NCBI RefSeq assembly: GCF_006345805.1
Contig: NC_043018.1
Coordinates: forward strand, 15,376,001-15,440,000
Source of the DNA: Octopus sinensis
Taxonomy: Eukaryota
Length of the DNA stretch: 64,000 nt
Direction: 5' to 3'
Positions 2,720-62,865 of this stretch are shown here, piece after piece. The notes below the pieces were generated by a model, which worked only from the letters and a program-made list of their open reading frames with translations, was not told the origin of the DNA and ran no database searches. Both the position numbers and the translations under genes were made by a program. Every line of letters begins with the position of its first letter. The stretch's first letter is position 1.

Positions 2720-2894
2720 ATGACTGATGATACAAGGTGGGAACATATTGTAAGTGAAAGCATTAAGGAACAATGTGAACTAGTCGTTCAGAGCAATATA
2801 AGTTTGTGGACTAAAGATGGTCAACTCCCATTAGATGTTACACAACATTTTTGTCCTACTGTCCGATGTCAAAGCCATGGTACCTGCGTAAATG
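2720..2894 (+). CDS. Exon 1 in window: MTDDTRW...[15 protein letters not shown] (post-VWD helical region and start of EGF)
   Basis: ttttacag|ATG ... AATG|gtaagc; 175 nt; phase 0-1. Confidence 0.9.
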
Positions 2895-3523: not shown

Positions 3524-3575
<52 letters not shown>

Positions 3576-6500
3576 CATTATTATTATTATTACAGGAACC
3601 TGTATATGTAGTGAAGGGTATGCTGGAGTTGACTGTTCAGAAAATATAAAAAAACCTCCAGAGTTGATGTTAATAGAATCTGATGGATTCTGTGATGAAC
3701 AATTAATGGCATGTGATTCTCTCATTGTGTATGGAAAAAATGTCCCCAGCAACCAAAATTTAACATGTGTTTTCAAAATTCATAAAGTAAGTTTTTAATA
3801 TTGCTTTTTAGTTTGCTAATTAAGGGATCATATATATATTATGAATTTGTATCTTCATACAAAAGTTGCTCATTATACAAGAGGCAGCACAGAAGTCAAC
3901 AACACTCTTTATCCTGATGATGATGATGATGATGATGATGTTAAGAAATGTCCATATAAAATGAATTTAGGAAAATTATTGTTTCAAACAAACTGCAAGG
4001 GGCTGATATGAAAATATGAAAACCCATAAAAGAAAAGATTAAATTGGAATACAGTCATATTTGCAGTAATGCATATCTAAAAGAAAAGCTATTCCCCATC
4101 TCTAAATATATCATTGTCATCATCATTTAACGTTCCTTTTTCTGTGCTGGCATGGGTTGGATGATTTGACATGGAAAGACAAGCCAGAAAGCTGCACTGA
4201 GTTCCAATGTCTACTTTGGCATGGCTTCTACAGTTACATACCCTTCCTAATGCCAACTACTTCACAAATTGTACAGGGCACTTTTTGTGATGTGTATATA
4301 CAAGAGTGCAAGCCCAAAGGTTAAGGTGTTGCACACATGATCCCAAGATCATGGTTTCAGTTCCTGGTCTGAGCATCATGCTGTGTTCTTGAGCAAAACC
4401 TTCATCTCACATTGCTCTGTGTTCATTTCAACATTTGGACGTTTCGTACTTCATACATCTGAACAGGCAATGTTAATTTTATAGAGGGACTGAGCAAATG
4501 TACCACACAGACATCATCATCATCATTGTTCGACCATGGTTGAGACAATGGAATTTACCATGCTACGCCAGACTTCACGGTCCATCATGGCATTACGGAG
4601 GTCCTGTTGCTGGATGCCTGTATCCCTGGAGACTACATCAGGGTAGGAGAGTGTGCGCCCTCTGGTATTGCGAGTAGATGGCTTCCAGAGGAGAAGAGTA
4701 GAAATTACTTCTTTTTCAGCTCTACAACAATGTCCAGCAAACTGGACTCTCCTACCTTTCACAAGAGATGACATAGGTGGTAGTTTCCCATATATTTGCA
4801 TTTTAGTTGGATGGCACTTCCACGAGAGATTTTGAGCTCTCATAAGGAGGCGAGTGTAGGTTCCATCCAACTGCCTCTCAAGCTTCTTTGATAACGTCCA
4901 GGTTTCTGAGCCATATAGTAGAATTGGTTCGACTGTGGCTTTGAATATTTCAAGTTTGAAGTCTCTACTTAGATTTGATGACCAGATCTTATGCATGTCA
5001 TTACAGGCTGACCAGGCCATACCCTTTCTATAAACAAATCATCTGTGCAAGTTGTTCTCCATGGAATTTCAGAACCCTCTTCTAATTGATTTTACCACAT
5101 AATATAAGTCTTGAGAAGATACAATATTTGCCTGGAAATTTTCTTTATGTCTCTCTTCACTGGTTGTGAAACCTATGTGAAACCCCAAGGCTGAGGTTGT
5201 AACATAATACAAACCAAGTTAGTTATTGTGTTGTCTGAGCATTTTAACTTTTTCTTTGTTTTTCTTTTAGCAACTTAGTGACAAGGTAAGATTTTTTATG
5301 CAGATGTAGGCATATTTCTAACGAGTAGTTGCATATTGTAGTAGTGCATTGTAATATATAATAATAATAATCAAAACTACTATTTAATGACCTTCTTTCT
5401 TACCAAGGCTGGGAGATCAAGAGAGGAGCAAGGAAATCAGGGTGTTCATGCCTTTACCAAAGGCCTTAACAACCTAATATGCAGTGGAGAAGTGAAACTG
5501 ATATCTCCAACATGAAATCAAATCTGAGACTAAGCCTTAGTTGGTTGAAAACTTACTGCCTTTCTCTTTAATTTCACAGATAAAAGAAATAAAACTAATA
5601 ACAACAACAATAATAATAATAATTAAAAAATGATGATAATGCCTAATTGGATCCATGGACATTTCTTAGAAAATATAACACTGTGTAACGTGACTTTTGT
5701 CATTGTGTAACAACTGTTATTCCCTATTTGCTGACCCCTAGAAAGTATGAAAAATGGCTAATATTTCCTTTGAACTTTGTTTTTGTTACATTTATTCAAA
5801 CCCCAAAGAATTCCTCTCAACACATGGCTCTGGAGCTCCCCAACTACTTGTGCTCTTGATCAGAGATGCACTAAGGGACATGCTCAAGTGGTCATGGTCA
5901 GGTAAATGACAAATCTGAGAATATTTGCTATATTCGCTATAGCAACCTTTCTGCTTCAGTAACTCTGCACTGAATCTGTCTGAAATGTAATGGAAAATAG
6001 CTCAGATTCAAAACATTGATGTCCACGTCTCAAAAGCAAAGTTTGAAGGAAATAATTGTCATTTCTTTGATTTCTAGAGTGAATCAAATAGGAAATAACA
6101 CTCACTGACCAAAAACAAAAGTGAAAAATACAAATATTGTTGCACAGTGTAATTTACTCATCTCTATCCTAAAACCACTCTAAAGAGAATGAATATTAAC
6201 AGTCACCCAGAATGGACAATAAAATGTTGCCTCTTTTATGATGACATCTCGCAATGTCATCACAATCAACATTTACCATTCTCTTCAACAAAGTCATTGC
6301 TGCCTGGGCTACAACCAGTGACAAATATCAACACCACCACTGCCACTACCACCACCACTACTACTACCACCACCACCACCACCACCACCACCACCACCAA
6401 GACCACCACTACTACCACTGCCACCAGCACTACAACCACCACCACCACCACCACTGCTACCACCACCACCACCACCACCACCACCACCACCACTGCTACT

Positions 6501-9500
6501 ACCACCACCACTGCCACTACCACCACTACTTCCATCACCTCTGCAACCATCACTACTACCATCACCAACTCTACTGCCACCATAACCACCACCACCTTCT
6601 CTACCAATACCATCACTACAACCACCACCACAACCACTACCACCACTACAACCACCTCTACAGCCACCACTATTACCACAACCACAACCACTACCACCAC
6701 TACAACCGCCTCTACAGCCACCACTATTACCACCACCACAACCACTACCACCACTACAACCACCTCTACAGCCACCACTATTACCACCACCACAACCACT
6801 ACCACCACTACAACCGCCTCTACAGCCACCACTATTACCACCACCACCACCACCACCACCACCACCACCACCACCACCACTGCTACTACCACCACCACTG
6901 CCACTACCACCACTACTTCCATCACCTCTGCAACCATCACTACTACCATCACCAACTCTACTGCCACCATAACCACCACCACCTTCTCTACCAATACCAT
7001 CACTACAACCACCACCACAACCACTACCACCACTACAACCACCTCTACAGCCACCACTATTACCACACCACAACCACTACCACCACTACAACCGCCTCTA
7101 CAGCCACCACTATTACCACCACCACCACTGCTACTACCACCACCACCACCACAACCACTACCACCACTACAACCACCTCTACAGCCACCACTATTACCAC
7201 AACCACTACCACCACTACAACCACCTCTACAGCCACCACTATTACCACAACCACTACCACCACTACAACCGCCTCTACAGCTACCACTATTACCACAACC
7301 ACTACCACCACTACAACCGCCTCTACAGCTACCACTATTACCACAACCACAACCACTACCACAACCATCATTTCTATGGCCATCAACATTGCCAGATACA
7401 TTTGTTGTTTTCTCTTTTGGGTGATTTTTAACTGTCCATTCTCTTTATTTCTCTCTCTTGCTTTCATTTTCTCTTCTATATTTCACACTCTTTCTCTTTC
7501 TTTTCTTCTCTCTCTTTCTAATGATATCGATATCTCCTTAATGTAATCATTCCTTTCATATTTTCTTCTCTCTTTCTTTCTCTTTCGGTCTTTCTCTCAC
7601 TCTTTCAATCTACATATCTTTGTGCAGTAATCCCCCACCATATTGCAGTTCACCTATCACAGTTCAACTATCATTGTTTATTATTTAAGCTTATGTTGAT
7701 TCTTCTGTGGTGTTCTTTTACATTTATAATAAAATAAGTCTATACAAATTATAAAAATAATAAAAAAGAATATACAGTACAGCGCTATGTCTACTTCACC
7801 CGCATTGAGACCCCCTTCGGTCATGAACGACCATGGGATTGCACCTAGAAAGTTACCCTCCCAGGCACAAGTCTGAGCAAGGTTGTTTATGGAAGACCAG
7901 CAGTCACTCCGCACACCGGCCTCCCCTTTCCACATCACCGATGTTATCCAAGAGAAAGGCAAAGGGGCCGATACAGCTTGGCACCTGTGACGTCGCAACT
8001 CATTTCTACAGCTGAGTGAACTGGAGCAACGTGAAATAAAGTGCCTTACTAAAGAACACAACACACAGCCCGGTCCGTGAGTCGAACTCACAGCCTCACA
8101 ATCGTAAGCTCGACACTCTAACCACTGAGCCATGCACCCACAATAGTCAAGGGATTACTGTATTTCTATTTTTCTCTCTCTTTCTCTCTATATATCTATT
8201 TATTTATCTTTATAGTTCTCTCTCTTGCTACTAGCACCACCACCACTAAATCTCTCCTTTGACTTACTTTCTGTTAGCATGCCTTTACACAAGTGACTAG
8301 TCGATAGTTACATAGTCACAGACAACAGTATTAATAAGAAAAACGAAATACCCAGTAACTCATTTTATAGGATAACAGTGACATTTTTGATAAAAATGCA
8401 AAGATAAAGAAATAATTCCAAATAACTCAAGCAGTGCTATAACCATTTAATGTAAAACCATAAAGCATTTTTGGGAGAAATCCTGAGTGATCTTAGCTTG
8501 TAGGGTAGTCCCTAGAGAATCCATGGGGTTGCCAAGACTTTCTTCAGGATTAACCTGGTAAACTTGGAGTCAATGCCAGGCTTTATTACCCAACAACAGA
8601 AGTGCAAGTTGAAGTACCAGTTACTCTCCAATAAATTTCTTTTTGAATCTACGAAGGTTTGCCCAGTGTCCTGCATTATCTCCCTTCTTACTTTGATCAG
8701 GATAGAGATTACTATCTGCAAGTATGAGCCCTGCAAGGTCAAATGGTTTTTTTTTATTTAGTCCATCTCCCTCACCATTCTCCAGAGTAATATAATTGCT
8801 GGTTTGTCTGCTCAGACTATGAAATGTTTGCATGATTTGCTGTCAAGTATATTTCACAATAAATAAAGCATTTAGATTATATAATAAAGTTATTTTATAC
8901 AATAAATATGCAGGTTAAAACATTAGAGGACCCTTAAGCCTTTGGCAGTGAAATTTTCAAAATTAACGAAGTAAAACAGTCAGAGAAAGATGGGTGGTGC
9001 AGTGAAAGTTGCGTGGGGCAATGTTATTGTTTTCTTATACTAAATTAAATGTAAATTGTTAGAATCTGTGGATTATTGAACAAAAACCCTGATTTACTTT
9101 TCATTCTTCTGATCTTGATAAAATATGAACTGGGCTAGTTTGTTAGAGCTGGTCAAGTAAACTTCACTTTTGAAAAAGGCAATTTATCAAAGCAATTATA
9201 GTAGAAGAATAATCAGAAATTGAGTTGCAGGACCCATGATATTTTTAGGTTCTTCAATAGTAGTTGGATCATTGTAAAGAATACCAGCAATACATATCCA
9301 TATAAACATAGACAGAGGAGCTGCATGTGTCCCAAGGGCTTAAAGCACTGAAGAGTCTTGCAGTGATGTAAACTGGGTTACTAATCACCAGCTAAAGGCA
9401 TAAACAATCCTCCAATGGGCTTCACACAGTTTCTGTTTATCACATTTCACAAACAAGGCCTTGGATAACACAAAGTTACAAATGCCTAAGGTGATGTACG

Positions 9501-13395: not shown

Positions 13396-14383
13396 CACAT
13401 ACATACATATGTAAAGATATACATCTAGATCTTTTTATTGTTGTAGAAATTTGAACAAACTGAAAGAATAGTAACAGTACCTGCTCAGGAAATCACATAT
13501 AACATCATTGACTGTCCAACGGATAAAATATCCAGTGCCGAATTCTCAGTCTCTCTACATTCAAATTTGCAACTGAGCAGCAATAAACTAGATGGCACTA
13601 TAGTCCATACAGGATGTTTTGAATGTGATGAAAATTATCGTAATTGTGTTTACAAGGTAAGTTCTCATTTCAAAGATTCAATCCAAATTCTACTTGTAAG
13701 ATTTATTGTAATTTTATTTAAATGTTGGTGCTCCAGCATAGTTATGAAATAAACTAAATATGAAGGGCCTTTGAGAGAAATTTTCCCATGTGGAACAAAT
13801 GTGGTTTATGGCCCAAATGTGGTGTTGAGCTCCTCTTGAAATTCAAAGGGCTTCTGAAGTCTTTTTTATTGAAGGATGGCACTATCAGATATTCTTTGGT
13901 TCTCTAGACCCAAGACCATTGTACCAGTTGAAGACCCCGTCCCCACTTTTAAAGTATGACTCACCCTTATTCTTCATCTTTCTTTTACCAACTGTCAAAT
14001 AGATAAAGCTATTAGGATTATCTGCTTTGGTTAGATGTTGCTAGCCAAATGCAAAAGTGAATTTTATCTTTTATTTTATCCTTCATCAAAAAGGAAGAAA
14101 ATGGAACAATTCGTGCTCTTGAGTCCGTTAGTTATTAGGGGATTCATTCATATTGTTGCTGGGGCCAACCGTCATATGATGGGGTCAACTATCATATGTT
14201 GGGTTCAACATCACATGCTGGAGTCGGCTGTCATTCATTGAGGTCAACAAGCCACATGTGAGATAAACTGATTTATACTTACCATTGCTTAATAGGGACA
14301 TACATATATGGATACATATACATGTGTGTATGTAAGTGTTTATATATATATATATATATATGATTATATATGTGTGTATGTGC

Positions 14384-17400: not shown

Positions 17401-17704
17401 ATGGTTTAAATGTACAGAAAACAAAAGACAAAGATAGGTGAGAGAACAACAAGCAGGTGTATTAGTTTGGTGCTCAGGAAAAATGGGAAAGTCTTTGACA
17501 TTTCATGGCTGTGCTCTTAGAAAGGGGTGAGAGGAAAAAATAGTGACAAAGAAAAAGAAAAAAAAGATGCAGAGGTTAATGATTTAACATCAGTATAAAC
17601 GTATATATATATGTGTGTATATACATATATATACGTATGTGTGTGTATATACACATATGTATGTATGAGTGTGTGTATATATATATATATAATTATAGAT
17701 ATAC

Positions 17705-17736
<32 letters not shown>

Positions 17737-17761
17737 ATATGTATGTATATATATGTGTATG

Positions 17762-17795
<34 letters not shown>

Positions 17796-17851
17796 TGTAT
17801 ATATATGTATATATATGTGTATATATATATGTATATATATGTATATATATG

Positions 17852-17882
<31 letters not shown>

Positions 17883-17893
17883 GTATATATATG

Positions 17894-17924
<31 letters not shown>

Positions 17925-30239: not shown

Positions 30240-30284
<45 letters not shown>

Positions 30285-31492: not shown

Positions 31493-31526
<34 letters not shown>

Positions 31527-39844: not shown

Positions 39845-40285
39845 TACGACAGGCTTCTTTCAGTTTCCGTCTACCAAATCCACTCACAAGGCATTGGTCG
39901 GAATTTGTTACCATATCTTCCATTGAGGGGACTGTGCCTCTTCGGAGGTCATTTTGTATTTTTGTCTGAGACCTGTTATAGTTTTGTTACCATAAACTGA
40001 ACTTCTTATATTTGCAGAGTGAACTCAGCCAGTTCCATATACAGTGGTTACTGTGGCAATGCACGAAGCCTACCTGAAACTGAATACTGTGATTGCATCG
40101 ATGGAGAGACACCTATTTGCGGAAAACAGCAAGACAGAATATACTGTCCACAAGCCGACTCTAAAAGATCAAGATATGGTAAATTATCCTGATGCTTGAT
40201 CTGTCTATCTGTCTGTTTTTTCTCTCCCAGATTGATCTGTGAGCTAGATCATTAACAACCCTCAAGCAATCAACTGATTGGTGTA

Positions 40286-40367
<82 letters not shown>

Positions 40368-41763: not shown

Positions 41764-41799
<36 letters not shown>

Positions 41800-54598: not shown

Positions 54599-55262
54599 TT
54601 GTGTTTGTTCCCCTAGCATTGCTTGACAACCGATGCTGGTGTGTTTACGTCCCCGTCACTTAGCGGTTCGGCAAAAAGAGACCGACAGAAAAAGTACTGG
54701 GCTAACAAAAAGAATAAGTCCCGGGGTCGAGTTGCTCGACTAAAGGCGGTGCTCCAGCATGGCCACAGTCAAATGACTGAAACAAGTAAAAGAAAAAAAA
54801 AAAATTAATAAAAGTTTTGATGGTGTTGAAGTATCATGTATGATAGGGTTGGGCCTTGTGAGTGAAACTTGATGAGGAGACATCTTTGAATTGCTTATTA
54901 CTAGTTTTATTTTTTACAGTACTCTTAATCCATATCACCCTATTTAACACCAGCTCTGGCCCCTGAGTGACTTTAGCTGGGTCCACTCTATTGCTGTATT
55001 TAGACATGGTCTCTGATCTAAGGATAAATTTCTTCCTTTCCTCTCATCAGTTTTGGGGTCCTCAGGAAAAAAGGGCCACAGATGCCACCTGCCTACCTTA
55101 AACTAAACCATTTAAAATGATTTGCTTTGTTTTGCAGAATGATCACTGTCTAATTGAAGACACATGTTACAATTTCACTGACAAGAATCCACAAAATGAC
55201 ACACTTGTCTGTGACCCATATGTCAATGAATATGAATGGTCTACATTCCAAGGTAAACACAG

Positions 55263-55294
<32 letters not shown>

Positions 55295-58200
55295 GCTGTT
55301 GTTGTTGTTGTTGTTGTTGTTGTTGTCGTCGTCGTCGTCGTCATCGTCGTCGTCGTCGTCGTTGTTGTTGTTTATTCATTGATTGTAATCGTATGATACC
55401 CATTCACTCCTACTGTATGACAACCTGGACAAATGTCTTATGTCATAATTTTAGATTTACTAAAATCTTTTGAATGGAATTAAATAAAAAGCAACCATTT
55501 TGGCAGAGGCCAGTTAGAAGGTTTGCTATTCCTGATCAAGCAGAGCTATGAACAAAGGGATTCCACCCATGACCATCCTGTTCTTTCTTTTTTTTTTTTC
55601 CATATTAAAAACTACGATGTCCATTGTGTCTTTCATTTTTATTGCAACTGTAATATGCAGTTACTATTTCTGGCATGTCAAGTTATGTAGTAAAGACTGA
55701 CTCATTGGTTTGTTGTTGAGCAAGAATAAGGATTAAAGATATTCCAGCCTTGACCATCTCATCTAAAATTTAGAAAAAATCCAGCATTATGTTATCCATG
55801 GGTTCCCATTCTTATTTTTAAGATGGTAGGATATAGCATGTGGGATGAAGGAAAATTTGGTTGCAAGCTGATCATGTGACCACACTGAAATCTTCTTTAG
55901 CTCTCTCATAAGCTACCCTGCAAAGTCTTAAAGTGGTTGATCTTATGAAGGGCATCGAACCATAAAAGAAACAAGCCCAAACTGGAGAGAGAGAGAGAGA
56001 GAGAGCTGGTCATTGGATCCATTGTGTTCAGTCAAAGTATTCAACCCATGCCAGCATGGAGAGCATATATAAAATCAAAACAGTAGTGAAGACAATTGTT
56101 CATGGCCTTTTCAAGAATATGAATGATGATTATAAGCAAACAGAAATGGTCCCAGTTATCCTTTGCTGACCAACCAAACAAGATTTGGTTTAATGGTCAC
56201 TTTGCTAAAATCTTGTAGATTTCATTAAAGTTGTTGGCTGAACAGAACTGAGATCTTAGAATTTCTAGTCATAACTAGCTTAGTTCTGAGTCAGACATAA
56301 TGTATCGAGGACTACATTGTCCAAAATGTTCTTCATTATGCAAGATGGTAAGGTTCAAGCAAACTTCTTAACTACAAAGTTATGACTACATCTATTTAAA
56401 AATTTTCTTATGTTGACCATGTAATTTCATTTAGCTCTCATTGTTTGTTTTTAAACCTATCAGTGTACCCTTACATCCGGGAACAGCCATCATTTAAGGT
56501 GGAAGTGAATGAAGAAGATAGTTTCAAGTTCGCCTGCTATTTTGTATACCCAAGGACTCCAGGCATACAAGTTTTTATCGAATGGTATATGGATTCATCT
56601 TTAATCAAAGTAGAACCCACCCAGCTTGGTCGATCAGTTTCTCTGCTATCAATTGAAAATATAAAAGGCATCAAATATGGTTCAAAGGTAATGTAAACAC
56701 ATCTGAAAGAATGAGTGTTGGTTAAAACTACCCAGGGTTTCCTGTTTTATGGCTGTTTTACCCCACTCATTCTTTTGTCATTCCACTCACTGATTATTTA
56801 CTAATATTCCATATATAGCTAAAATCAAGTTTTACACCTGTTAGACTATGCTTCTCTTAAGAGACTTTATAAAATTAAAATAAAATTAGAATCATCTCCA
56901 TACAACAGTCAAGATCAAGTTGTCTTGGTTTGTAGAATAGGTATACTGTATCCTTTTAACACTGTAAAAGCAGGAGTAAAGAGATGTGCAAAAGTCTGAG
57001 TATTACATAGAACGCATTTGGGTATTTTCCCAGCTCTGCATTCAAATTTTACCTTCGGAGTCATTGACTGAATGGTATCATGACTGGATGATGGACTGGT
57101 TGAATTGTTAGAACATTGGATAGGATGTCTTGCAGTGTGTGTTCTTATTCTTTATCTTTTCACAACAATACTTCTGATGACTTGGGTACAAAGCTATATC
57201 AGCATAGGACAGGGACCTTTCTTAAATAAACATTGTGTGAAGAGGGTAACAATCATACCAGTGTTGACCAAGCTTGAGCCTACACGTGTTGATACATGGA
57301 TAATTCTGACCCCTAAAACTGTATCAGTGGCCTACACAACTCTGCCTAGCCTTGCTGAATTAATTGCAAAACTATTCTATGGGGTATAATAAAAGGGTTC
57401 CAGTTCTGAGTTCAAGTAGGAAATGAAAAATCATTCCTGCTTGAAAAGCTAGAATCTTCACTGGTCAGCCAGTTGTTGTTTACCCCTAATCCAGTTCTTA
57501 CTGAGCAGACCTATGATCAAACGATTATTTTGACTCAATGTAACTATAACTGTATTTTACCATGTTATGCACTTCATCTTTTGAGACTTTAGGATGTGAC
57601 TTAAAGAGAAGTGGCAGCCATTTCTAGCAATATAATTAACATATGTTCATTGATGTGAAGCTATGGGAAACTTCAACAACATGCATCGCTGCCACTTTAT
57701 TTAATACTAATAACTCGTAAGATATTGATAACTTATTTCAAAGAGAAGACAAAAGTCTCATTCAACCTGCCAGAAACAGCAACTACATATCCTTCGAATC
57801 ACACCATAGCAGTCTAAATAAAATCATAAACATATTGGATAATATAATCAATGTATCTAAAAAAAAAAAAAGATAATGATCCTGACTGGAATATTTCTGT
57901 TTGTAAATCTGCTCAGTGAGAGCCAACTTGGGGTTAAACAACAAAAACATTCAGTCATTCATTTCTGTTGCAATATTGATTTCAAATTTTGGTACAAGGC
58001 CAGCAATTTTGGGGGAGAGAGAGAGAGCAGTCAGTGCTCAACTGATACTTATTTTTATCAGCCCCCAAAAGGATGAAAGGAAAAGTCAACCTTGACAGAA
58101 TTTGAACTCAGAACATAAAGACAGACAAAATGCTGCCAAGTATTTTTCCCAGCATGCTGATTCTGCCAGTTTATTGTCCTAATCATCATCATCATCATCA

Positions 58201-59986
58201 TCATCGTTTAACGTCTGTTTTCCGCGCTGGCACGGTTTGGACGGTTCGACCGGGGTCTTGGGAGCCAGGGGCTGCCCCAGGCTCCAGTCTGATCTGGCAG
58301 TGTTTCTACAGCTGGATGCCCTTCCTAATGCCAACCACTCCGCGAGTGTAGTGGGTGCTTTTTACGTGCCACCTGCACAGGTGCCAGAGGGGTCTGGCAT
58401 CGGCCACGATCGGTTGGTGCTTTTTTATGTGCCACCGGCACAGAAGCCATTCGAGGCAGGGTTGGCATCGGTCACGTTCGGATGGTGCTTTTTTGCAATA
58501 TTAAAAAAAGAATAAGGCAGCAAGCTGGCAGAATCCTTAGCAGACGGGGCAAAATGCTTAGTGGCCATTCGTCTGTCTTTATGTTCAGAGTTCAAATTCT
58601 GCTGAGTTTGATTTTGCCTTTTATCCTTTCCGGGTTGATAAAAATAAGTATCATCTGAGCAGTAAAATCAATTTTTTTGATCTGGCCCCTTCCCCCCAAA
58701 CCTGCTGCCCTTGTGCCAAAATTTGAAGCCAATAATAAAAGCAAATATTTCTTATAAATGCCCAAAACAATTCCAATGATGTGTTTCTTTAATTTCAGTT
58801 TTCTTGTGCTATGACTGCATGTTTCAACAGCAACTGTTCCTTCACCCGAAGTCCTCCAAGACGAAGTAATGTTATTTCTGCTGAACTTGAGGTAACTTAA
58901 GCATAATTTCAATAATCATTTTATGAGAATGTAACCTGCTGCCATCTAAATTAAGATTACTTTATTTATCAATAAATAATTGCTTCTCTTGTACATTGAT
59001 AATATAGCCAGGACCCCATCTCAAAGTCAAGCTATTTAAGGCCAGAAAATACGTCAACCTTCATCAGTTATTGATCTTCAAAGTTCTGATGAGATCCATA
59101 ATGGAGCATTGCTCCCCCTGTCAGGAAGGTCCTACTGTTGCCCACTAGACGTCCTATATCACATCTAGAAAAGATCACTTGGCTGATTAGCATAAAGTTA
59201 CTTCTAAACATACTTCAGCTACTTGCCCACAGATGTGCTGTATCCTGTTTCCCCCTTTTCTACCATTCCCCTATTGGCCCCTTGCACGATAAGCAGTCAT
59301 GTAATCACTGCTTCAACAAGACACTTGCATCTTTCCCTCTATCTTACTTACATATCCCTTGACACTATGCCTCCTCTCAGTCAAGTGATTTTGTCTTGCA
59401 GATACATGGTCACCTCATCAGTGTTGGTGCCATGCAAAAAAGCACCCAGTACACTCTGTGATGCGATTGGCATTAAGAAGAGTATCCAGCTGGAGAAACC
59501 CTGTCAAAGCAGACAGTGGGGCTCAGCCTAGTCTCTCTGGTCCATTAGTTTATGTTAAACCATTCAACCCATGCCAGCACGAGAGAAGAATCTTAAAGGA
59601 TATTCATGATGTGTGTGTATGTGTGCATATGCATGTATATATGTATTATATATGTATATATATCATCATTATCATCATCATCATCATTTAGCGTCCGCTT
59701 TCCATGCTAGCATGGGTTGGACGGGTCAACTGGGGTCTGTGAAGCTGGAAGGCTTCGTCAAGCCCAGTCAGATCTGGCAGTGTTTCTACGGCTGGATGCC
59801 CTTCCTAACGCCAACCACTCCGCGAGTGTAGTGGGTGTTTTTTACGTGCCACCTGCACCATATATATATATTAATTATATTTTTTAGTAATTTTGTTACA
59901 TATTTAAATAATATAAATTAATCATATGTATTGGCTTAAGTCTTTCATTGTTTGATTTGCCTAATAGTGGTTTTGTCTCTAATTTA

Positions 59987-60022: not shown

Positions 60023-62865
60023 TGAGAAAATCTTGAATTATATTGAAATGTTTTCTATTGGCTGGACCTGGAGTTCATTGAGTTTGTTGTCCTGTTTATA
60101 CTGATACAATTGCAGTTGATGTTCTTGTTGATGCTGCAGGAAAAATACAAGCAGACAGGGATCTAGTGGGATGGCATTTGGGGAGAAAGGATTGAGTCTA
60201 ACATTCTATCTTCCATTAATTTTTCCAAATTGACTTACTAGGGTAGCTTGGGAGAAATTTAGATATTTTCATACTGTTAGAGCAATTGCTTTAACAGCTG
60301 ACATATGTTTATGATCCACTCAACCATGAGGTCATGGTAGGATTGTGTGCTAGAACTCATATCAAGCAGCTGTTATTAAATTCTTGTGAAATTTGATGAA
60401 ATTTTTAATTGAGTTTATATTTGTTTTCTTAATTCTAGATAAAGGAAAAGGAAATGGTGATAGAAGAAAGCACCACAAATAACTACATTCACGTCAAAAG
60501 TGTTATTCCACCAAAATATTTTTGCCCATCTTATACCAACACTTCATGTGCATTAACTGCTACAGTTTCATTCAAGAGTATGAAGAAATTAACATGTTCA
60601 GATAAAAGCAGTATCTACCAAATGGTTGCTGAACCACAAAAGAAGTCGACAAAAGGATGTGGTTTTGAGATTAATTTTAAATGGACAGCAATTGCTGTGA
60701 GAGGCACAGCAGATGGTTTATATGATGGAAACCAATCCGTTATTATAAACCTTTTACCAGGAATTATGACAAGCACGGCAGAGATCACATTTGATAACCA
60801 ATACCAGATTAAGGTAAGCTTTGTTCATCTAATGGACATAATATACAACAAGGAAATGAGATTATGAAGGACTATTTATGTTGTGTTTCAAGTTGCACAA
60901 AATAGATAGCTGCCAAACCACCCTCACATCTGTGGTCTACTATCTCAAAAGAAAAGAATGGGAAGTTTAGTTGCAATAGTAAAAAGCACAAGAAAGTTTG
61001 TTGGTACCAATAGGAGCTAGATGCACAATGGAACACTCCAAAAATGCAAGATACACTATGGCATCAAATAGTATAAGATACATGATGCTTGTACTAAATA
61101 CTACATACATACATTTTTGTAGGTATCAGTGGCAGAGAAGCTGTGTAGTTATAGGTGTCTGATACTTATAGTAGCGTTAAAGAGCAGATGTTATAATATA
61201 CTCTTTTACTCGTTTCAGTCATTTGACTGCGGCCATGCTGGAGCACTGCCTTTAGTCGAGCAAATCGTCCCCAGGACTTATTCTTTGTAAGCCTAGTACT
61301 TATTCTATCGGTCTCTTTTGCCGAACCGCTAAGTTATGGGGACGTAAACACACCAGCATCGGTTGTCAAGCGATGTTGGGGAGACAAACACATACATACA
61401 CATAGAAATATATACATATATACAACGGGCTTCTTTCAGTTTCCGTCTACCAGATCCACTCACAAGGCTTTGGTTGGCCCGAGACTACAGTAGAAGACAC
61501 TTGCCCAAGGTGCCACATAGTGGGACTGAACCTAGAACCATGGGGTTGGTAAGCAAGCTACTTACCACACAACCGTGAAAATAAAAGGCTGGATTGTCAT
61601 GGTTAGAATGCTTTGATCACATGTCTGCTGAAATTGAGGTGACTTAGGGCTAGAAAGCAAGACTTTTCAGCAGTAAATACTTATATCAATGAAGAAGATA
61701 GGAATGATATTTTACTTTTCTTCCACATTGAATGAAATCATATGGGAACTTTTATATCTCCTTACTTATCATACTGGAATAATCAAATTTGTTTTAATAA
61801 TTAAAAAATGAAAGAATGTTTGGAAACTTGTGGGAATTTTCATCTGCAAAAAATGATAATCTGAAGTTGCTGTGTTTGGATGAATTGTATGAGATGGAGA
61901 GAGAAGAGGAAACTGAGATTATGTAATTAGCCATTCATTAAGGTTTATTTTAATGATTGTAATTTATTCAGAATTGTTAAAATGTTGACTGAAATAGTTT
62001 TGGGGTGGTCTATTCTATACAAATGCTGAAAAATACTATTTAGTGCCTACTAGTAATAAATATACTATGATGTCGAAAGTATTGTAGCAACAACATTGTC
62101 CTCATTCAAGGGGACTTAATGTTTTCACATCTGATTCATCATGATTGTGATTGGAGGTTATCAATGACACCCATAGCTGTTGCCAATAAGGGGCCCCTAG
62201 CTATTTTTATTTGTTCTCTTGATCCATCCACATCTAAGAAAGCCTTAGTAATCAAACCAACATGGTTGCCTCTTTGCAGCCATTCAACCTGCTGGAAAGA
62301 ACAGTTCACTCTGCCTCAGATTACACCAGCTCACATACTTTGAAAAGGAAATTAAGTAACGTTGTCCCAGATTCTCTGTTCGTAAGAGAAAAGATAGGAT
62401 AATGATGGTTGGCATACTTTTGAAGATAAGTCTGCTGGATTAAGACCGGCCTTGGTTAAAAAAGGGAATGGTTGGAATGTCTTTGACTGTAGATTTGCTT
62501 TATCAAAGCTGATTTGGATTTAAACAGCTTCAACAACAACCCTTCAGAAACAAAAGAATGAGTGAACATCTTTGCAGTTGTTCAGCTGAATAGAAATAGC
62601 AGTCAAATCATCCTCAAATCAAACCCAACCATATTAAAAGGTAGTAGATAATACGGTCTTAAACACACTATCTCTAAGAACAAATGACCATAGCTTGGGT
62701 ATACTATGGATTATAGATTCACTCAATCAGGTATGATCATGGGGCCAAACAACAACAGTATTTACATTAGTTTTCTTTCCCTTTTCAGACAACAGTCGTT
62801 GACAGAGATAGAACAGCTTTGTGTAATTCTCTTAATGATCCACACATGACCACATTTGATGGACG
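2720..62865 (+). CDS. Partial multi-exon gene (27 exons in window) encoding a large multi-module VWDE-like protein (Ig-like/VWD/Cys-rich/EGF repeats plus two PAN/apple domains); both ends lie outside the window
   Basis: Manual exon chaining: all introns GT-AG, phases compatible throughout, 4328 nt without an in-frame stop. Motifs include TDD..W, C..C..HG.C.NG.C.C..GY.G.DC (EGF), GEF.LY, C.C, GLCG, WPT.SG and [10 protein letters not shown], typical of VWDE-family proteins. Confidence 0.9.
3498..3592. repeat. (GTT)n(ATT)n microsatellite abutting the exon 2 acceptor
   Basis: Direct inspection. Confidence 0.9.
3596..3786 (+). CDS. Exon 2: [14 protein letters not shown]...GFCD...LTCVFKIHK (end of EGF and following domain)
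   Basis: ttattacag|GA ... CATAAA|gtaagt; 191 nt; phase 1-0. Confidence 0.9.
4513..5032 (-). mobile_element. 5'-truncated RTE-clade LINE (RT C-terminal region) with (TGA)n tail
   Basis: ORF 4523..5020 with [19 protein letters not shown] and DREVWR motifs, followed by tgatgatgatg. Confidence 0.85.
5271..5285 (+). CDS. Exon 3: 15-nt microexon QLSDK
   Basis: Long pyrimidine tract ttttctttgtttttcttttag| and AAG|gtaaga donor; phase 0-0; restores exact length parity with the paralogous exon at 53490. Confidence 0.75.
6330..7372. repeat. (ACC/ACT/ACA)n compound repeat with nested 33-39 nt and ~387 nt duplications; Thr-rich in one frame
   Basis: tccatcacctctgcaacc at 6531 and 6918; recurring accactacaaccgcctctacagccaccactattacc units. 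Confidence 0.9.
7809..8141 (-). mobile_element. tRNA-derived SINE family D
   Basis: Minus-strand head gcatggctcagtggttagagtgtcgagcttacgattgtgagg.tgtgagttcgact; near-identical to 27928..28263. Confidence 0.82.
10463..10615. repeat. (TG)n/(TA)n/(TATG)n microsatellite
   Basis: Direct inspection. Confidence 0.9.
10666..10925. repeat. 129-bp direct tandem duplication beginning inside a family A SINE head
   Basis: cactgtacagtattac at 10681 and 10810. Confidence 0.9.
11560..13335 (+). repeat. AT-rich tandem array, about 4.3 units alternating ~387 and ~439 bp (826-bp dimer), each with a mini-ORF like a Penelope-like element N-terminus
   Basis: Anchor gtaagatagaac at 11790, 12229, 12616 and ~13054; ORFs 11777..11917 and 12216..12353 read ...SLK(N/D)[23 protein letters not shown]. 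Confidence 0.85.
13447..13656 (+). CDS. Exon 4: KFEQTER...IDCP...[15 protein letters not shown]
   Basis: ttgttgtag|AAA ... TACAAG|gtaagt; 210 nt; phase 0-0. Confidence 0.9.
14677..14706 (+). CDS. Exon 5 (candidate, possibly alternative): 30-nt microexon [10 protein letters not shown]
   Basis: ttttattttctgtttcag| and CGG|gtaaat; phase 0-0; no counterpart in the next module. Confidence 0.55.
15160..15745 (+). mobile_element. 3' end of a second RTE family: RT C-terminus plus a 3' UTR matching repeat family B
   Basis: LREKLG...LHWYG.VM.M...G...R.RP.KT...V.KDL..LGL, then the family-B tail ending gttaaatgatgatgatg. Confidence 0.75.
16113..16552 (-). mobile_element. Repeat family B, long form with the same 5' end as 2135..2527
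   Basis: Reverse complement begins gatcagaatcgaaatcgatcaatggaaattgcag. Confidence 0.8.
16587..16701 (+). CDS. Exon 6: [15 protein letters not shown]...[14 protein letters not shown] (Cys-rich module end)
   Basis: tcttctggcag|GAA ... AAAG|gttggt; 115 nt; phase 0-1. Confidence 0.9.
16852..16968 (-). mobile_element. SINE family A, 5' part
   Basis: ttggtcggcccgaggc...cacagccactcctacgcc. Confidence 0.75.
16990..17220 (-). mobile_element. Possible non-autonomous Helitron/Helentron-like 5' fragment
   Basis: Minus strand starts a|tctattatataaaatccgttctgtgtgtc...catccgattgcgctcagatttgatatg next to (TA)n; pattern recall only. Confidence 0.4.
17595..17930. repeat. (TA)n/(TATG)n compound microsatellite
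   Basis: Direct inspection. Confidence 0.9.
18041..18307 (+). CDS. Exon 7: PAN/apple domain 1
   Basis: ttcaaaccag|AT ... AATG|gtaagt; 267 nt; phase 1-1; C..W....G ... CKNAC ... CKSINY ... ECYL ... YHEWKC pattern. Confidence 0.92.
18407..18633. mobile_element. Second degenerate TTAA-type MITE
   Basis: ttcaatcctttcgttac ... aatgaaagggttaa imperfect termini. Confidence 0.45.
19952..20215 (+). CDS. Exon 8: PAN/apple domain 2
   Basis: ctcatttcag|AT ... GGAG|gtaagt; 264 nt; phase 1-1; ECLRLC ... FLCRSVD ... CYLS ... YLEWNC pattern. Confidence 0.92.
21424..21842 (+). mobile_element. tRNA-related SINE family A, full length, with internal (TA)n(TG)n
   Basis: gcgcaggagtggctgtgtggtaag...ggttcagtccc head; tail aaatgactgaaacaagtaaaagagtaaaagag. 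Confidence 0.85.
22075..22304 (+). CDS. Exon 9: Ig-like beta domain opening the second module (IQCQL...YYVRW...LYGTQ)
   Basis: ctcatgaag|AT ... ACTCAG|gtaaat; 230 nt; phase 1-0. Confidence 0.88.
22434..23180 (-). mobile_element. Two family B copies (~22434-22692 and ~22846-23180)
   Basis: (cat)n-ttta(g/a)..tcc..t.ccatgct.gcatgggttggacgg start; ggatgcc.ttcctaac.ccaa core. Confidence 0.7.
23440..23670 (+). mobile_element. SINE family A, 3' half
   Basis: gtgtttgtcccc...ttgcttgacaaccgatgctgg...gaaacaagtaaaagag. Confidence 0.75.
24232..24324 (+). CDS. Exon 10: [13 protein letters not shown]...LSIE
   Basis: ttttatttcag|GTT ... ATAGAG|gtcagt; 93 nt; phase 0-0. Confidence 0.88.
24841..25067. mobile_element. 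227-bp piggyBac-like MITE (TTAA-flanked)
   Basis: ttaa(t)cctttagt ... actaaagggttaa; near-identical copy at 36902..37128. Confidence 0.75.
25270..25615. mobile_element. Two degenerate family C copies in opposite orientations
   Basis: tttcatccttt...ataaaataagtac on the minus strand and ttctgagttcaaattctgctgaattcgactttgcctttcatt on the plus strand. Confidence 0.55.
25699..26064 (+). CDS. Exon 11: [12 protein letters not shown]...VPASLYC...KNDMISD...ETLK (pre-VWD beta domain)
   Basis: ttttctctag|GTA ... TTAAAG|gtaaat; 366 nt; phase 0-0. Confidence 0.9.
26414..26808 (+). mobile_element. SINE family A, slightly 5'-truncated
   Basis: Same body and tail as 21424..21842. Confidence 0.8.
27709..27782 (+). 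CDS. Exon 12: start of VWD domain, [24 protein letters not shown]
   Basis: aaattttcag|TTG ... TACAG|gtacag; 74 nt; phase 0-2; aligns with exon 27. Confidence 0.85.
27928..28263 (-). mobile_element. tRNA-derived SINE family D
   Basis: Head gtgaaggcgcgtggctcagtggttagagcg...gagctcgaatccc; tail ending ccgaagggggtc. Confidence 0.82.
28483..28713 (+). mobile_element. tRNA-related SINE, family C
   Basis: ggcggcgagctggcagagtcgttagc...gagttcaaattcc (A/B-box-like); central gcctttcatcctt..gggtcgattaaataagtaccag segment that I recall as Meta/MESC-domain-like (unverified). Confidence 0.8.
28958..29268 (-). mobile_element. SINE with family E head and an alternative 3' region (tail type 2)
   Basis: Same head and ctaaagccccacgaggctccggcagggg body, then a different 3' region containing atggactggtgtcccgtccagc. 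Confidence 0.78.
29456..29519 (+). CDS. Exon 13: [24 protein letters not shown]
   Basis: atttgaacag|C ... CATAAG|gtttgt; 64 nt; phase 2-0; GEF.LY motif. Confidence 0.88.
29628..29673 (+). ncRNA. Degenerate minimal type I hammerhead-like motif
   Basis: gacac CTGAAGA agtctggagggtatatcagct GAAA tgtt gtgtt; stem I gacac/gtgtt; stem III pair lost (tgtt instead of cgtt). Confidence 0.5.
29755..30238 (+). mobile_element. Family B variant, long form
   Basis: Subrepeats gtggcac(g/a)t(g/a)aaa; tail ccaacccatgctagcatggaaagcagacgttaaat(gat)n. Confidence 0.7.
30483..30577 (-). ncRNA. Type I hammerhead ribozyme motif with minimal palindromic stem III, inside a ~380-bp repeat flanked by (TA)n
   Basis: Minus strand: ccttgattttc CTGATGA g[extended stem II]c GAAA CATAT GTC gagaataaagg; stem I pairs at 10 of 11 positions. 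Confidence 0.75.
30716..30931 (+). CDS. Exon 14: [26 protein letters not shown]...DGKIYK
   Basis: atcttttcag|GTC ... TATAAG|gtaata; 216 nt; phase 0-0. Confidence 0.9.
31392..31490 (-). mobile_element. Older, diverged R4/Dong-type RLE C-terminal fragment
   Basis: Translates [27 protein letters not shown]; compare [26 protein letters not shown] in the adjacent element. Confidence 0.6.
31493..35693 (-). mobile_element. Near-full-length non-LTR retrotransposon of the R4/Dong (RLE endonuclease) clade, single ORF broken by 5 short indels
   Basis: RT motifs [26 protein letters not shown] and YMDD; CCHC knuckle [18 protein letters not shown]; RLE motif RPDII...IDMTVP...KYKDLE; (TAA)n 3' tail at 31493-31525; 5' boundary approximate. 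Confidence 0.9.
36556..36661 (+). CDS. Exon 15: [14 protein letters not shown]...[10 protein letters not shown]
   Basis: ttatttggcag|GTA ... GAAG|gtaaga; 106 nt; phase 0-1. Confidence 0.9.
36902..37128. mobile_element. 227-bp piggyBac-like MITE
   Basis: TTAAccctttagt ... actaaagggTTAA terminal inverted repeats. Confidence 0.8.
38325..38385 (+). CDS. Exon 16: VWD end, GLCGMYDDN...PLSY
   Basis: ttttacttgcag|GT ... TATAG|gtaact; 61 nt; phase 1-2; GLCG motif. Confidence 0.88.
38545..38947 (+). mobile_element. Probable solo LTR (~400 bp, CpG-rich)
   Basis: TGTAA...TTACA termini, internal AATAAA, composition unlike the flanks; no clean TSD found. Confidence 0.45.
39583..39901 (-). mobile_element. 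SINE family A, 3' two-thirds
   Basis: cttgtttcagtcatttgactgcggccatgctggag...gcattggtcgg. Confidence 0.8.
40018..40178 (+). CDS. Exon 17: RVNSASSIY...YCDCIDG...IYCPQ
   Basis: tatatttgcag|A ... ATATG|gtaaat; 161 nt; phase 2-1. Confidence 0.88.
40437..41359 (-). repeat. Tandem array of five 184-185 bp units derived from SINE family C (5' head missing)
   Basis: Unit starts at 40437, 40621, 40806, 40990 and 41175; reverse complement matches the SINEs at 28483 and 50790. Confidence 0.92.
41877..42071. mobile_element. Diverged inverted copy of the same MITE, interrupted by family B
   Basis: ttaaccctctagcatttaaac...ctcacacctaccctgcaa..aatgcatgattaattcaaa. Confidence 0.6.
42075..42300 (+). mobile_element. 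Family B copy
   Basis: ggagtggttggcgttaggaagggcatccagc...aaaacggacgttaaacc(atg)n. Confidence 0.78.
42949..43034 (+). CDS. Exon 18: [13 protein letters not shown]...EEPK
   Basis: ttgtttcag|GT ... CCAAAG|gtagaa; 86 nt; phase 1-0. Confidence 0.82.
43405..43710 (-). mobile_element. SINE related to family E with a tail type 2-like 3' region
   Basis: Head ggaggcacatggcctagtggttagagcagc...ggttcgaatctcagaccgggcg; atggaccggcgtcccgtccag segment. Confidence 0.7.
44105..44878. repeat. (CT)-rich compound microsatellite with a ~30-bp higher-order unit (ctctctcttgctctcactctctcttt)
   Basis: Direct inspection. Confidence 0.9.
45387..45742 (+). mobile_element. 5'-truncated copy of the same RTE family as 4513..5032
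   Basis: Near-identical peptide [14 protein letters not shown]...TTVEQ* followed by tgatgaatgatgatg. Confidence 0.85.
46064..46219 (+). CDS. Exon 19: [19 protein letters not shown]...[10 protein letters not shown]
   Basis: cttaattacag|ATA ... ATCCAG|gtttgt; 156 nt; phase 0-0; WPT.SG motif. Confidence 0.88.
46405..46575 (-). mobile_element. RTE RT fragment
   Basis: [11 protein letters not shown]...GGG.SESI..RI..GW.KFR.LLPLL in ORF 46392..46640. Confidence 0.7.
46762..47143 (-). mobile_element. tRNA-derived SINE family E (tail type 1) with 13-bp TSD
   Basis: TSD taagacaggacat at 46749-46761 and 47144-47156; head tggcccagtggttagggcagc...ggtttcgattccc. Confidence 0.88.
47698..47920 (-). mobile_element. 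3' end of the same mariner family
   Basis: Reverse complement contains tgcttcaaatggagaatactttgaaggc...aatattgcaaaattctg, matching 609-680, and ends at a TA. Confidence 0.7.
48259..48412 (+). CDS. Exon 20: MRDDEQL...DQC...[14 protein letters not shown] (paralogue of exon 1)
   Basis: caatcaatag|ATG ... AAAG|gtatga; 154 nt; phase 0-1. Confidence 0.88.
49376..49764 (-). mobile_element. SINE family E (tail type 1) with 13-bp TSD
   Basis: TSD acataagttgtaa at 49363-49375 and 49765-49777. Confidence 0.88.
49965..50275 (+). mobile_element. Family B variant
   Basis: gccatgtaaaaagca subrepeats; ccgacccatgccagcatgg...tgatgatgatg tail. Confidence 0.65.
50575..50760. repeat. (CA)n/(CATG)n compound microsatellite
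   Basis: Direct inspection. Confidence 0.85.
50790..51025 (+). mobile_element. SINE family C with 16-bp target-site duplication
   Basis: TSD ggtatacataccagca at 50774-50789 and 51026-51041. Confidence 0.88.
51337..51527 (+). CDS. Exon 21: [14 protein letters not shown]...GLCN...FTCKLKEIQ (paralogue of exon 2)
   Basis: tttctcatcag|AT ... ATTCAG|gtattg; 191 nt, same length as exon 2; phase 1-0. Confidence 0.9.
52470..52617 (+). mobile_element. SINE family A, 3' fragment
   Basis: cttagcagtttggcaaaagagaccgatag...gtaaaagagtaaaagag. Confidence 0.7.
53490..53708 (+). CDS. Exon 22: ILNQTY...ILCPLP...[17 protein letters not shown] (paralogue of exons 3+4)
   Basis: ccctctacag|ATA ... TTGCTT|gtaagt; 219 nt; phase 0-0. 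Confidence 0.9.
53742..54060 (-). mobile_element. Family B copy
   Basis: (cat)n cgtttaatgtccgttttc...ggatgcccttcctaacgccaacc. Confidence 0.75.
54386..54793 (+). mobile_element. SINE family A, full length
   Basis: ggcgcaggagtggctgtgtgg ... gaaacaagtaaaaga. Confidence 0.85.
55138..55252 (+). CDS. Exon 23: [11 protein letters not shown]...[14 protein letters not shown] (paralogue of exon 6)
   Basis: ttgttttgcag|AAT ... CAAG|gtaaac; 115 nt, same length as exon 6; phase 0-1. Confidence 0.9.
55262..55372. repeat. (GTT)n(GTC)n microsatellite
   Basis: Direct inspection. Confidence 0.9.
56464..56687 (+). CDS. Exon 24: Ig-like domain opening the third module (FACYF...IEWY...KYGSK; paralogue of exon 9)
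   Basis: aaacctatcag|TG ... TCAAAG|gtaatg; 224 nt; phase 1-0. Confidence 0.85.
57960..58740. mobile_element. Degenerate family C copies (minus at ~57960-58170, plus at ~58515-58740) flanking a family B copy
   Basis: aaaggatgaaaggaaaagtcaac...gaatttgaactcagaac and ggcagcaagctggcagaatcc...gagttcaaattctgc. Confidence 0.55.
58182..58497 (-). mobile_element. Family B copy
   Basis: (cat)n cgtttaacgtctgttttcc...gctggatgcccttcctaatgccaacc. Confidence 0.78.
58799..58891 (+). CDS. Exon 25: [13 protein letters not shown]...AELE (paralogue of exon 10)
   Basis: ctttaatttcag|TTT ... CTTGAG|gtaact; 93 nt, same length as exon 10; phase 0-0. Confidence 0.88.
59410..59858. mobile_element. Two convergent family B copies (plus at ~59410-59610, minus at ~59665-59858)
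   Basis: Both carry the aacccatgc.agca/tgctagcatgggttg tail motif. Confidence 0.65.
59860..60000 (+). repeat. Short diverged fragment of the repeat forming the 11.5-13.3 kb array, between (TA)n tracts
   Basis: gtttgatttgcctaatagtgg..tctctaatttaa followed by (TA)n, matching the array end near 13295-13345. Confidence 0.55.
60439..60813 (+). CDS. Exon 26: [10 protein letters not shown]...IPPKYFC...DGLYDG...YQIK (paralogue of exon 11)
   Basis: cttaattctag|ATA ... ATTAAG|gtaagc; 375 nt; phase 0-0. Confidence 0.9.
61201..61574 (-). mobile_element. SINE family A
   Basis: Reverse complement matches the family A body and tail. Confidence 0.82.
62789..62865 (+). CDS. Exon 27: start of [28 protein letters not shown]
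   Basis: cccttttcag|ACA ... GGACG|gtaaga; 77 nt; phase 0-2; DPH..TFDG motif. Confidence 0.92.

Follow-up and report, generated by a model that had tools for sequence, protein, structure and literature searches.

Part of a large VWDE-related gene with reiterated modules in Octopus sinensis, a member of a conserved and uncharacterised lophotrochozoan family

VWDE has been described as a protein in which a VWD domain precedes EGF repeats that vary in number (PMC7390686, PMC9117669). It is conserved in deuterostomes and needed for limb regeneration in the axolotl, in a study that purposely left protostomes out (PMC7390686), and a planarian study sets it apart from Equinox on domain grounds (PMC9117669). 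We analyzed a stretch of 64,000 nt from the Octopus sinensis genome (referred to here as the window; NCBI RefSeq assembly GCF_006345805.1, contig NC_043018.1, positions 15,376,001 to 15,440,000 of the forward strand), in which 26 exons encode reiterated VWD-containing modules (modules A and B). Coordinates below are positions in the window on its forward strand, and exon phases are given from start to end. Like VWDE, the locus combines VWD with a teneurin/tenascin-type EGF, and its homologues carry an Ig_VWDE domain upstream of the VWD. Unlike VWDE as published, it has a single EGF per module, several VWDs, and PAN insertions, and a transmembrane anchor is found in its relatives. The single VWD with a C-terminal EGF run that defines VWDE was not seen, given that the window holds two VWDs and the relatives 2 to 4, with the C-terminus lying beyond the window. 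A preliminary description, made from the letters of this DNA, had called the protein VWDE-like. That name holds in that the VWD passes the Pfam cut-off, the EGF is of the teneurin type, and Ig_VWDE occurs in relatives; it does not hold for the definition by a single VWD plus an EGF array. On these comparisons, we would class the protein with VWDE, as a variant that has reiterated modules, bears PAN domains, and is probably anchored in the membrane.

For the gene model, AG/GT sites were scored by generic splice-site position weight matrices, and a codon table was trained on a dozen obvious exons. A frame-consistent dynamic programme chained the exons, and the chain was then refined by a hidden Markov model (HMM) of homologues that comprised the VWD-to-next-EGF stretches of nine relatives. 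The chain search was run without knowledge of the exon coordinates in the preliminary description, and it yielded de novo the lengths 175, 191, 15, 210, 115, 267, 264, 230, 93, and 366 nt and, farther downstream, 154, 191, 115, 224, 93, 375, and 77 nt. Two exons of 219 and 74 nt were added through paralogy and phase. The homologue HMM maps in order onto the window; it exposed two exons missed at first (29456-29519 and 46064-46219) and prefers the acceptor at 36556. Once exon 29456-29519 had been added, acceptors 30733 and 36472 were dropped for 30716 and 36556. The final model comprises 26 exons on the plus strand (2720-62865; 4298 nt; 1432 codons; zero stops), every one of which is flanked by AG...GT in good context.

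The preliminary description had chained 27 exons in frame, for a product of ~1442 aa. The chain itself was confirmed, at 26 exons and 1432 codons; the difference of exactly 10 codons corresponds to a 30-nt candidate exon (14677-14706). This candidate, chosen in the first pass, is low-complexity sequence with no counterpart in the scallop alignment and was rejected. A tblastn search of the window with a scallop protein (Pecten maximus XP_033756293.1) gave 20 high-scoring segment pairs, all on the plus strand and all at model exons (0 on the minus strand). Because these matches sit only at the chained exons and the spliced product scores 648 bits, the chain is not a chance product, and we conclude from sequence comparison that it is real.

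The 648 bits come from a phmmer search in which residues 2 to 1432 of the model and residues 1080 to 2556 of the Pecten protein form one collinear alignment (E = 3.7e-197; 29.7% identity). The linker exons 40018-40178, 42949-43034, and 46064-46219 align in order and in phase within both the scallop protein and the homologue HMM. Since the collinear scallop alignment spans the module junction, the evidence points to one transcript and not to tandem genes, and it is very likely that modules A and B are one transcription unit. The earlier proposal of one large VWDE-like multi-exon gene with reiterated modules is supported by the same alignment.

Two or more tandem paralogous genes, with A ending near 40190 and B starting at Met 42879 with a signal peptide (MGFFLYC...LVSG), are very unlikely. 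An in-frame ATG (42879) and a 22-residue hydrophobic stretch do lie upstream of 42949, in phase with that exon, and read-through of donor 40178 reaches a stop after five codons. However, the supposed signal peptide is poly-Phe from a T-rich tract ending TTTCAG/G (the slash marking the splice site), i.e., a textbook acceptor with its polypyrimidine tract, and Met 42879 was rejected as a start codon on account of its position in that tract. The donor at 40178 reads G/GTAAAT, there is no AATAAA for 1.9 kb past it (40178-42059), and no other signal-peptide-like exon was found between the modules. The residues from 42949 on and exon 46064-46219 fit within the scallop protein and the homologue HMM, and the exons starting at 2720 and 48259 are each preceded by an acceptor site, with no signal peptide in their translations. 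The ATG with its poly-Phe codons (42879-42948) mimics a signal peptide and could mislead gene predictors into a new gene model.

As one transcription unit, the gene extends past both ends of the window, because exon 1 is internal (strong acceptor, no signal peptide encoded) and exon 26 ends within a VWD. The window would hold an internal part of one very large gene (2720-62865, plus strand).

An exhaustive profile search with the pair of beta-sandwich exons described below yielded 88 proteins. Long relatives were found in Argonauta hians, Bulinus truncatus, Pecten maximus, Bradybaena similaris, Haliotis, Aplysia, Candidula, Saccostrea, the nemertean Tubulanus polymorphus, and the annelid Owenia fusiformis, and all are annotated as "hypothetical" or "uncharacterized" (e.g., Pecten LOC117339037, i.e., XP_033756293.1, 2584 aa; Argonauta GAB1607640/41; Bulinus KAH9523928; Tubulanus XP_074642559). 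They hold 1 to 4 VWD modules (2 to 4 in the Argonauta, Bulinus, Pecten, Tubulanus, and Bradybaena models) with a period of ~1000 residues, together with teneurin-type EGFs. Additional domains in relatives are PAN (Pecten), Laminin_G_3, and F5/8 type C. The octopus product shares with Pecten LOC117339037 its segment order over 1432 residues, the position of the PAN pair, and the loss of the DPH Asp in the same VWD, and it shares reiterated modules with this and the other relatives. It differs from them in that identity is ~30% and that they carry other inserted domains and other module counts.

The architecture had been presented as lineage specific, a claim that does not survive the comparison, as it is collinear in the scallop and has relatives in gastropods, a nemertean, and an annelid. 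The preliminary description had also allowed that the architecture might turn out to be widespread and already described: widespread it is, but no published description of the family was found in the literature on VWDE with octopus, scallop, or mollusc. We conclude that the sequences define a conserved, uncharacterised lophotrochozoan family of VWDE-related proteins, of which the present gene is one more member. The relatives are already in public databases, nameless and unstudied, and the gene is not a surprising discovery. On the comparisons above and the domain matches below, we regard the exon structure, the domain content, the single collinear coding unit, and the family membership as established.

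Gene models of the relatives are visibly fragmented, as had been suspected for the annotation of this gene, with Argonauta and Bulinus models that start or end within a VWD. Argonauta model P0006 begins within a VWD, and model P0090 begins with the Met of a segment of the exon-1 type. Partial models lie side by side in Bulinus, and the multi-module models all stop within a VWD.

With 78 Cys and 24 N-x-S/T sequons among its 1432 residues, the spliced product would be part of the extracellular region of a giant, Cys-rich, N-glycosylated protein of the VWDE-related lophotrochozoan family. Its proposed super-module runs from a teneurin-type EGF through a Cys-containing beta-rich segment, a small Cys-rich knot, a VWDE-type Ig domain, a novel beta-sandwich, and a VWD to a Cys-rich linker. 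According to Pfam, a teneurin/tenascin-type EGF opens each module; exactly one EGF lies between the two VWDs and one ahead of the first.

In module A, exon 1 (2720-2894; 175 nt; phase 0 to 1) begins with a conserved segment, "M-DD...QC", and also covers the first half of the teneurin/tenascin-type EGF (homologue HMM, 38 bits; Pfam EGF_Teneurin, 28.1 bits; EGF_2, 23.2 bits). Exon 2 (3596-3786; 191 nt; phase 1 to 0; HMM, 47.9 bits; scallop tblastn) adds the rest of the EGF and begins the Cys-containing beta-rich segment, which has no Pfam match. The micro-exon 3 (5271-5285; 15 nt; phase 0 to 0; splice sites of 6.8 and 6.5 bits) encodes QLSDK, five residues that fill the scallop alignment and leave a 1-residue gap beside them in the scallop row. 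The beta-rich segment continues in exon 4 (13447-13656; 210 nt; phase 0 to 0), which ends on a C..C.....C motif and aligns to its paralogue and to the scallop protein. Exon 5 (16587-16701; 115 nt; phase 0 to 1; scallop tblastn) encodes the small Cys-rich segment (HC...TCY...CDP...W); a block like it directly precedes the transmembrane helix in single-module relatives. Neither this Cys-rich segment after the EGF nor the one after the VWD matches a Pfam family.

The interleaved PAN domains of the preliminary description were recovered as two Pfam PAN_1 matches in module A, with a separate exon of phase 1-1 for each. Exon 6 (18041-18307; 267 nt) encodes the first PAN/apple domain (39.3 bits; E = 5.7e-10), which aligns with a scallop PAN, and exon 7 (19952-20215; 264 nt) encodes the second (32.2 bits; E = 9.6e-08; scallop tblastn E = 9e-16). 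One module thus carries two PAN/apple domains, each a single symmetrical exon.

The Ig domain follows, with its main part (Cys...Trp) in exon 8 (22075-22304; 230 nt; phase 1 to 0) and its final strand in exon 9 (24232-24324; 93 nt; phase 0 to 0), which holds the second Cys and a C....C pair. Both Ig segments of the window (230 + 93 nt and 224 + 93 nt) show the canonical Cys-Trp-Cys pattern, and in an alignment of 20 sequences both Cys are invariant and the Trp is nearly so. Ig_VWDE (PF25776) was the top Pfam family, matched by 5 of the 20 homologous Ig segments (best E, 6e-05), and the part of the scallop protein that aligns to exons 56464-58891 matches it with 33.4 bits (cut-off, 28.1).

Exon 10 (25699-26064; 366 nt; phase 0 to 0) encodes one entire beta-sandwich domain, N-terminal to the VWD. 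This domain of ~120 residues, encoded by the 366-nt exon and its 375-nt paralogue, has no match among the Pfam-A families scanned. An AlphaFold2 model of the 375-nt exon domain is all beta, with a predicted local distance difference test score of 84 from a 61-sequence alignment (37 from 3 sequences). A Foldseek search of the model against the PDB gave nothing significant (best E, 0.05; template modeling score, <=0.57), and the sole match in a sequence search of the PDB was at the EGF level, to reelin. On the predicted structure, the domain is a generic Ig-like beta-sandwich, nothing more specific. Residues 70 to 112 of the beta-sandwich (60439-60813) contain a short motif that matches giant bacterial "beta strand repeat-containing" proteins, with 53 such stretches in one of 7219 aa. 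These matches, over a motif of 30 to 40 residues, were judged to be unrelated, i.e., a convergent or low-information similarity.

The module-A VWD is spread over exons 11 to 15. It starts in exon 11 (27709-27782; 74 nt; phase 0 to 2), with SPI instead of DPH, and continues in exon 12 (29456-29519; 64 nt; phase 2 to 0), which covers HMM positions 36 to 61 and fits both neighbours in phase. Exon 13 (30716-30931; 216 nt; phase 0 to 0) encodes the VWD centre (HMM, 57.5 bits; tblastn matches with Argonauta and scallop proteins) and exon 14 (36556-36661; 106 nt; phase 0 to 1) the C-terminal strands, the alternative acceptor at 36472 fitting the homologues less well. The VWD ends in exon 15 (38325-38385; 61 nt; phase 1 to 2), the weakest exon of the set. 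Joined, these exons (27709-38385) match Pfam VWD over profile positions 8 to 145 of 156 with 26.5 bits (cut-off, 22.9; E = 9.4e-06); the cut-off is passed only after the two missed exons are added.

Three exons lead to the next module. Exon 16 (40018-40178; 161 nt; phase 2 to 1; HMM, 33.7 bits) encodes the Cys-rich post-VWD segment (...CDC) and has a GTAAAT donor. Exon 17 (42949-43034; 86 nt; phase 1 to 0) is the inter-module linker, in which "RIEFKYENE" aligns to "RFEFDDD" of the scallop linker. Exon 18 (46064-46219; 156 nt; phase 0 to 0) encodes a Cys-rich linker ("SWPTESG...C...C...C"), placed by HMM positions 287 to 339, by its splice sites, and by the scallop alignment.

Module B repeats the series. 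Exon 19 (48259-48412; 154 nt; phase 0 to 1) is the paralogue of exon 1 (2720-2894) and encodes the first half of the second EGF, and exon 20 (51337-51527; 191 nt; phase 1 to 0; homologue HMM and scallop tblastn) is that of exon 2 (3596-3786). Exon 21 (53490-53708; 219 nt; phase 0 to 0; scallop tblastn) corresponds to the 15-nt and 210-nt exons together (5271-5285 and 13447-13656). The paralogue of exon 5 (16587-16701), exon 22 (55138-55252; 115 nt; phase 0 to 1; scallop tblastn), is not followed by PAN exons. The module-B Ig domain lies in exon 23 (56464-56687; 224 nt; phase 1 to 0; paired with 22075-22304) and exon 24 (58799-58891; 93 nt; phase 0 to 0; paired with 24232-24324), which holds the Ig end and the C....C pair. 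Exon 25 (60439-60813; 375 nt; phase 0 to 0; paired with 25699-26064) encodes the module-B beta-sandwich. Exon 26 (62789-62865; 77 nt; phase 0 to 2; paired with 27709-27782) starts the module-B VWD (HMM, 40.3 bits; tblastn identity of 57 to 71% to Argonauta and scallop proteins). The eight paralogous exon pairs of equal phase given in the preliminary description (175/154, 191/191, 15 + 210/219, 115/115, 230/224, 93/93, 366/375, and 74/77 nt) were all recovered. Its count of at least three consecutive modules was not: each exon type, EGF, Ig, and VWD occurs just twice in the window, and the second VWD consists of its first exon only. Three units are reached only when partial ones are counted, phased Ig to VWD to EGF as in single-module relatives.

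In alignment, modules A and B are 23% identical and keep all cysteines. Because the copies are only ~23% identical, the duplication is ancient. Module A is 26 to 34% identical to its scallop counterpart and scores higher against it than against module B; since it is closer to the scallop counterpart and shares with it the PAN pair and the Asp loss, the duplication would predate the split from bivalves. A recent whole-module tandem duplication, as first proposed, is at odds with an inter-module identity of just 23%, versus 26 to 34% between module A and the scallop. In the proposed history, the two copies would stem from an ancient duplication, with the A-type features common to the scallop protein.

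At the VWD motif, module B reads NDPH, as does the family consensus, module A reads SPI, and the scallop has SPH at the same place. The Asp loss in the module-A DPH is ancestral and not decay, because the scallop VWD also lacks the Asp at the same place. The RGM family, MUC4, and SUSD2 are membrane-anchored VWD proteins with a GDPH self-cleavage site. The octopus protein resembles them in having a VWD-type domain in a membrane-tethered protein (with the anchor here taken from relatives) and D-P-H at the start of the module-B VWD; unlike them, it has NDPH and not GDPH, lacks the motif in module A, and is otherwise unrelated in architecture. A weak RGM_C match in an Argonauta relative (E = 4.4e-4) is the sole pointer to self-cleavage. 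We offer only as a long shot that the family is a protostome VWDE counterpart of giant type I membrane proteins, in which autocatalytic Asp-Pro cleavage at NDPH in most VWDs, though not in that of the PAN-bearing module, would leave fragments linked non-covalently or by disulfides, to be shed or remodelled.

Repeated VWDs in a large Cys-rich extracellular protein are also found in VWF, the gel-forming mucin D assemblies (VWD-C8-TIL-E), zonadhesin, and alpha-tectorin. Unlike these, the octopus product has no detected C8, TIL, E, Pro/Thr/Ser-rich (PTS), or CTCK segment, and an Ig domain and a beta-sandwich precede each VWD. Pfam scans of the product gave no C8, TIL, TILa, or mucin-type match at E values up to 1 to 10, and the spliced product is without a PTS mucin segment.

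Seven relative models include a C-terminus (Tubulanus, Bradybaena, Bulinus P0042, two of Haliotis, Owenia, and Aplysia). Each has one strongly hydrophobic segment of 24 to 34 residues, which directly follows a block like exons 1 to 5 and precedes a tail of 51 to 83 residues, and at least five of the seven start with an N-terminal signal-peptide-like sequence. By these sequence features, the seven C-terminally complete relatives are type I membrane proteins. NPAY or YNPx motifs occur near the C-terminus in several tails (P0011, P0042, P0051, and P0084) and might be sorting or adaptor-binding signals.

Because every C-terminally complete relative has a transmembrane segment and a short tail, membrane anchoring appears likelier than a secreted polymer. 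By analogy with these relatives, the full octopus protein would cross the membrane once, by a C-terminal helix, and have a short tail in the cytoplasm; EGF and Cys-rich segments would form a stalk that displays the PAN, Ig, and VWD modules. By the same analogy, a secreted mucus polymer is less likely than an adhesion or receptor protein anchored in the membrane, and we give about an even chance to a very large membrane-anchored protein that acts in adhesion or ligand binding.

The preliminary description had proposed a lineage-specific secreted polymer, matrix, or mucus protein, arising by recent tandem duplication and multimerising via VWD like VWF and the gel-forming mucins. This is unlikely. 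VWD domains are present, Cys and glycosylation sites abound in the product, the window is compatible with secretion or shedding, and the C-terminus of multi-module relatives is unobserved. On the other side, the family is widespread in Lophotrochozoa, the 23% identity between modules makes the duplication ancient, and C8, TIL, TILa, and the PTS segment are missing from the product as scanned. The poly-Thr open reading frame (ORF) at 6189-7424, moreover, is an intronic microsatellite across which the scallop alignment is contiguous. Together with the membrane anchors of the seven relatives, the lack of C8, TIL, and PTS segments indicates that the proposed secreted polymer, matrix, or mucus protein is probably wrong.

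Taken as a whole, one giant gene of the lophotrochozoan VWDE-related family, with ancient modules and a membrane-anchored product, is the best explanation and a reasonably probable one. Several points weigh against it. The exon model is supported by sequence signals and homology, from genomic DNA alone, and at the weak exon 38325-38385 the product is ~16 residues shorter than the scallop protein. The two Ig segments of the window themselves give no Ig_VWDE match in Pfam. Module B and the third scallop module are not reciprocal-best matches, and this reciprocal test is ambiguous. The window holds neither the N- nor the C-terminus, such that neither a signal peptide nor a transmembrane anchor has been observed for this gene itself. 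The multi-module relatives (Pecten, Argonauta, and Bulinus P0003) are truncated models without a C-terminus, and all relatives in which the anchor is seen have just one or two modules.

A decaying, non-expressed pseudogene copy is extremely improbable. The DPH motif is lost in the module-A VWD and several domains lie below Pfam thresholds; however, the scallop VWD also lacks the Asp of DPH, the 26 exons and 1432 codons contain no stop or frameshift, all splice sites are canonical, and all cysteines are kept between modules. A word-indexed protein search with a 435-aa Ig-to-VWD query gave no matches, and one with the 375-nt exon found nothing beyond one genomic ORF of a related species. This ORF, in a 1.4-kb genomic contig of run SRR11869391, is 82% identical at the protein level; the contig is the only close relative found and covers one exon. 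In that comparison the exon has zero indels, conserved splice sites, and a ratio of nonsynonymous to synonymous substitution rates (dN/dS) of 0.48, and its flanking introns have 9 gap columns beside 98 aligned positions upstream and 30 beside 269 downstream. The single comparable exon thus evolves fairly fast (dN/dS, 0.48), with a nucleotide identity about that of its introns, as would suit a pseudogene, yet it is free of indels while the flanking introns carry them.

The window is AT rich (GC, ~0.37), and 35% of its bases repeat within it, with microsatellites, short interspersed nuclear element-like repeats, and fragments of long interspersed nuclear elements (LINEs); most long ORFs derive from repeats. 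The 5.6-kb intron within the module-A VWD holds a LINE-type retrotransposon (32190-35337, minus strand) with two ORFs. The first, of 505 aa, has no Pfam match, and the second, of 552 aa, matches RVT_1 (E = 1.3e-26) and zf-RVT; the copy may be young because both ORFs are open. Five head-to-tail copies of a 185-bp unit, 96% identical, occupy 40432-41358, in the intron that separates the linker exon from the last Cys-rich exon of module A, and single copies, some inverted, lie at ~28480-28720, 25410-25650, and 50790-51030. Microsatellite arrays of (CACCAC)n, (TC)n, and (TA)n at 6332-7367, 44108-44878, and 17602-17924 are intronic and lie outside the coding chain; the (CACCAC)n array yields poly-Thr, poly-His, and poly-Val ORFs of 250 to 430 aa, and the (TA)n array stops ~120 bp before the first PAN exon begins. 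One retroelement family has left two oppositely oriented fragments at a distance of 40 kb (4523-5020, minus strand, in a module-A intron; 45384-45728, plus strand, in an intron of the linker region), each with the C-terminal part of a reverse-transcriptase ORF and with near-identical peptides. A short ORF at 303-434 (plus strand; "...FVPHLLTDQKQSW...") resembles a fragment of a mariner-type transposase but has no Pfam match.

The locus and its relatives define a conserved lophotrochozoan family with a reiterated VWDE-type core (Ig, beta-sandwich, VWD, and EGF) and PAN, LamG, or discoidin additions, and with a membrane anchor in the complete relatives. The exon and phase map is a template for joining fragmented mollusc gene models, and the domain of ~120 residues ahead of the VWD, without a match among the Pfam-A families scanned, is newly pointed out. 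To our knowledge, only a handful of genes, VWDE among them, have been shown to be indispensable for the regeneration of vertebrate appendages, and the biochemistry of VWDE is unknown. If cleavage at NDPH did take place, the chain of fragments could be shed or remodelled, e.g., during regeneration or the response to wounds, the setting in which VWDE acts in vertebrates. The family also offers a way into the question of what VWDE-type modules bind.

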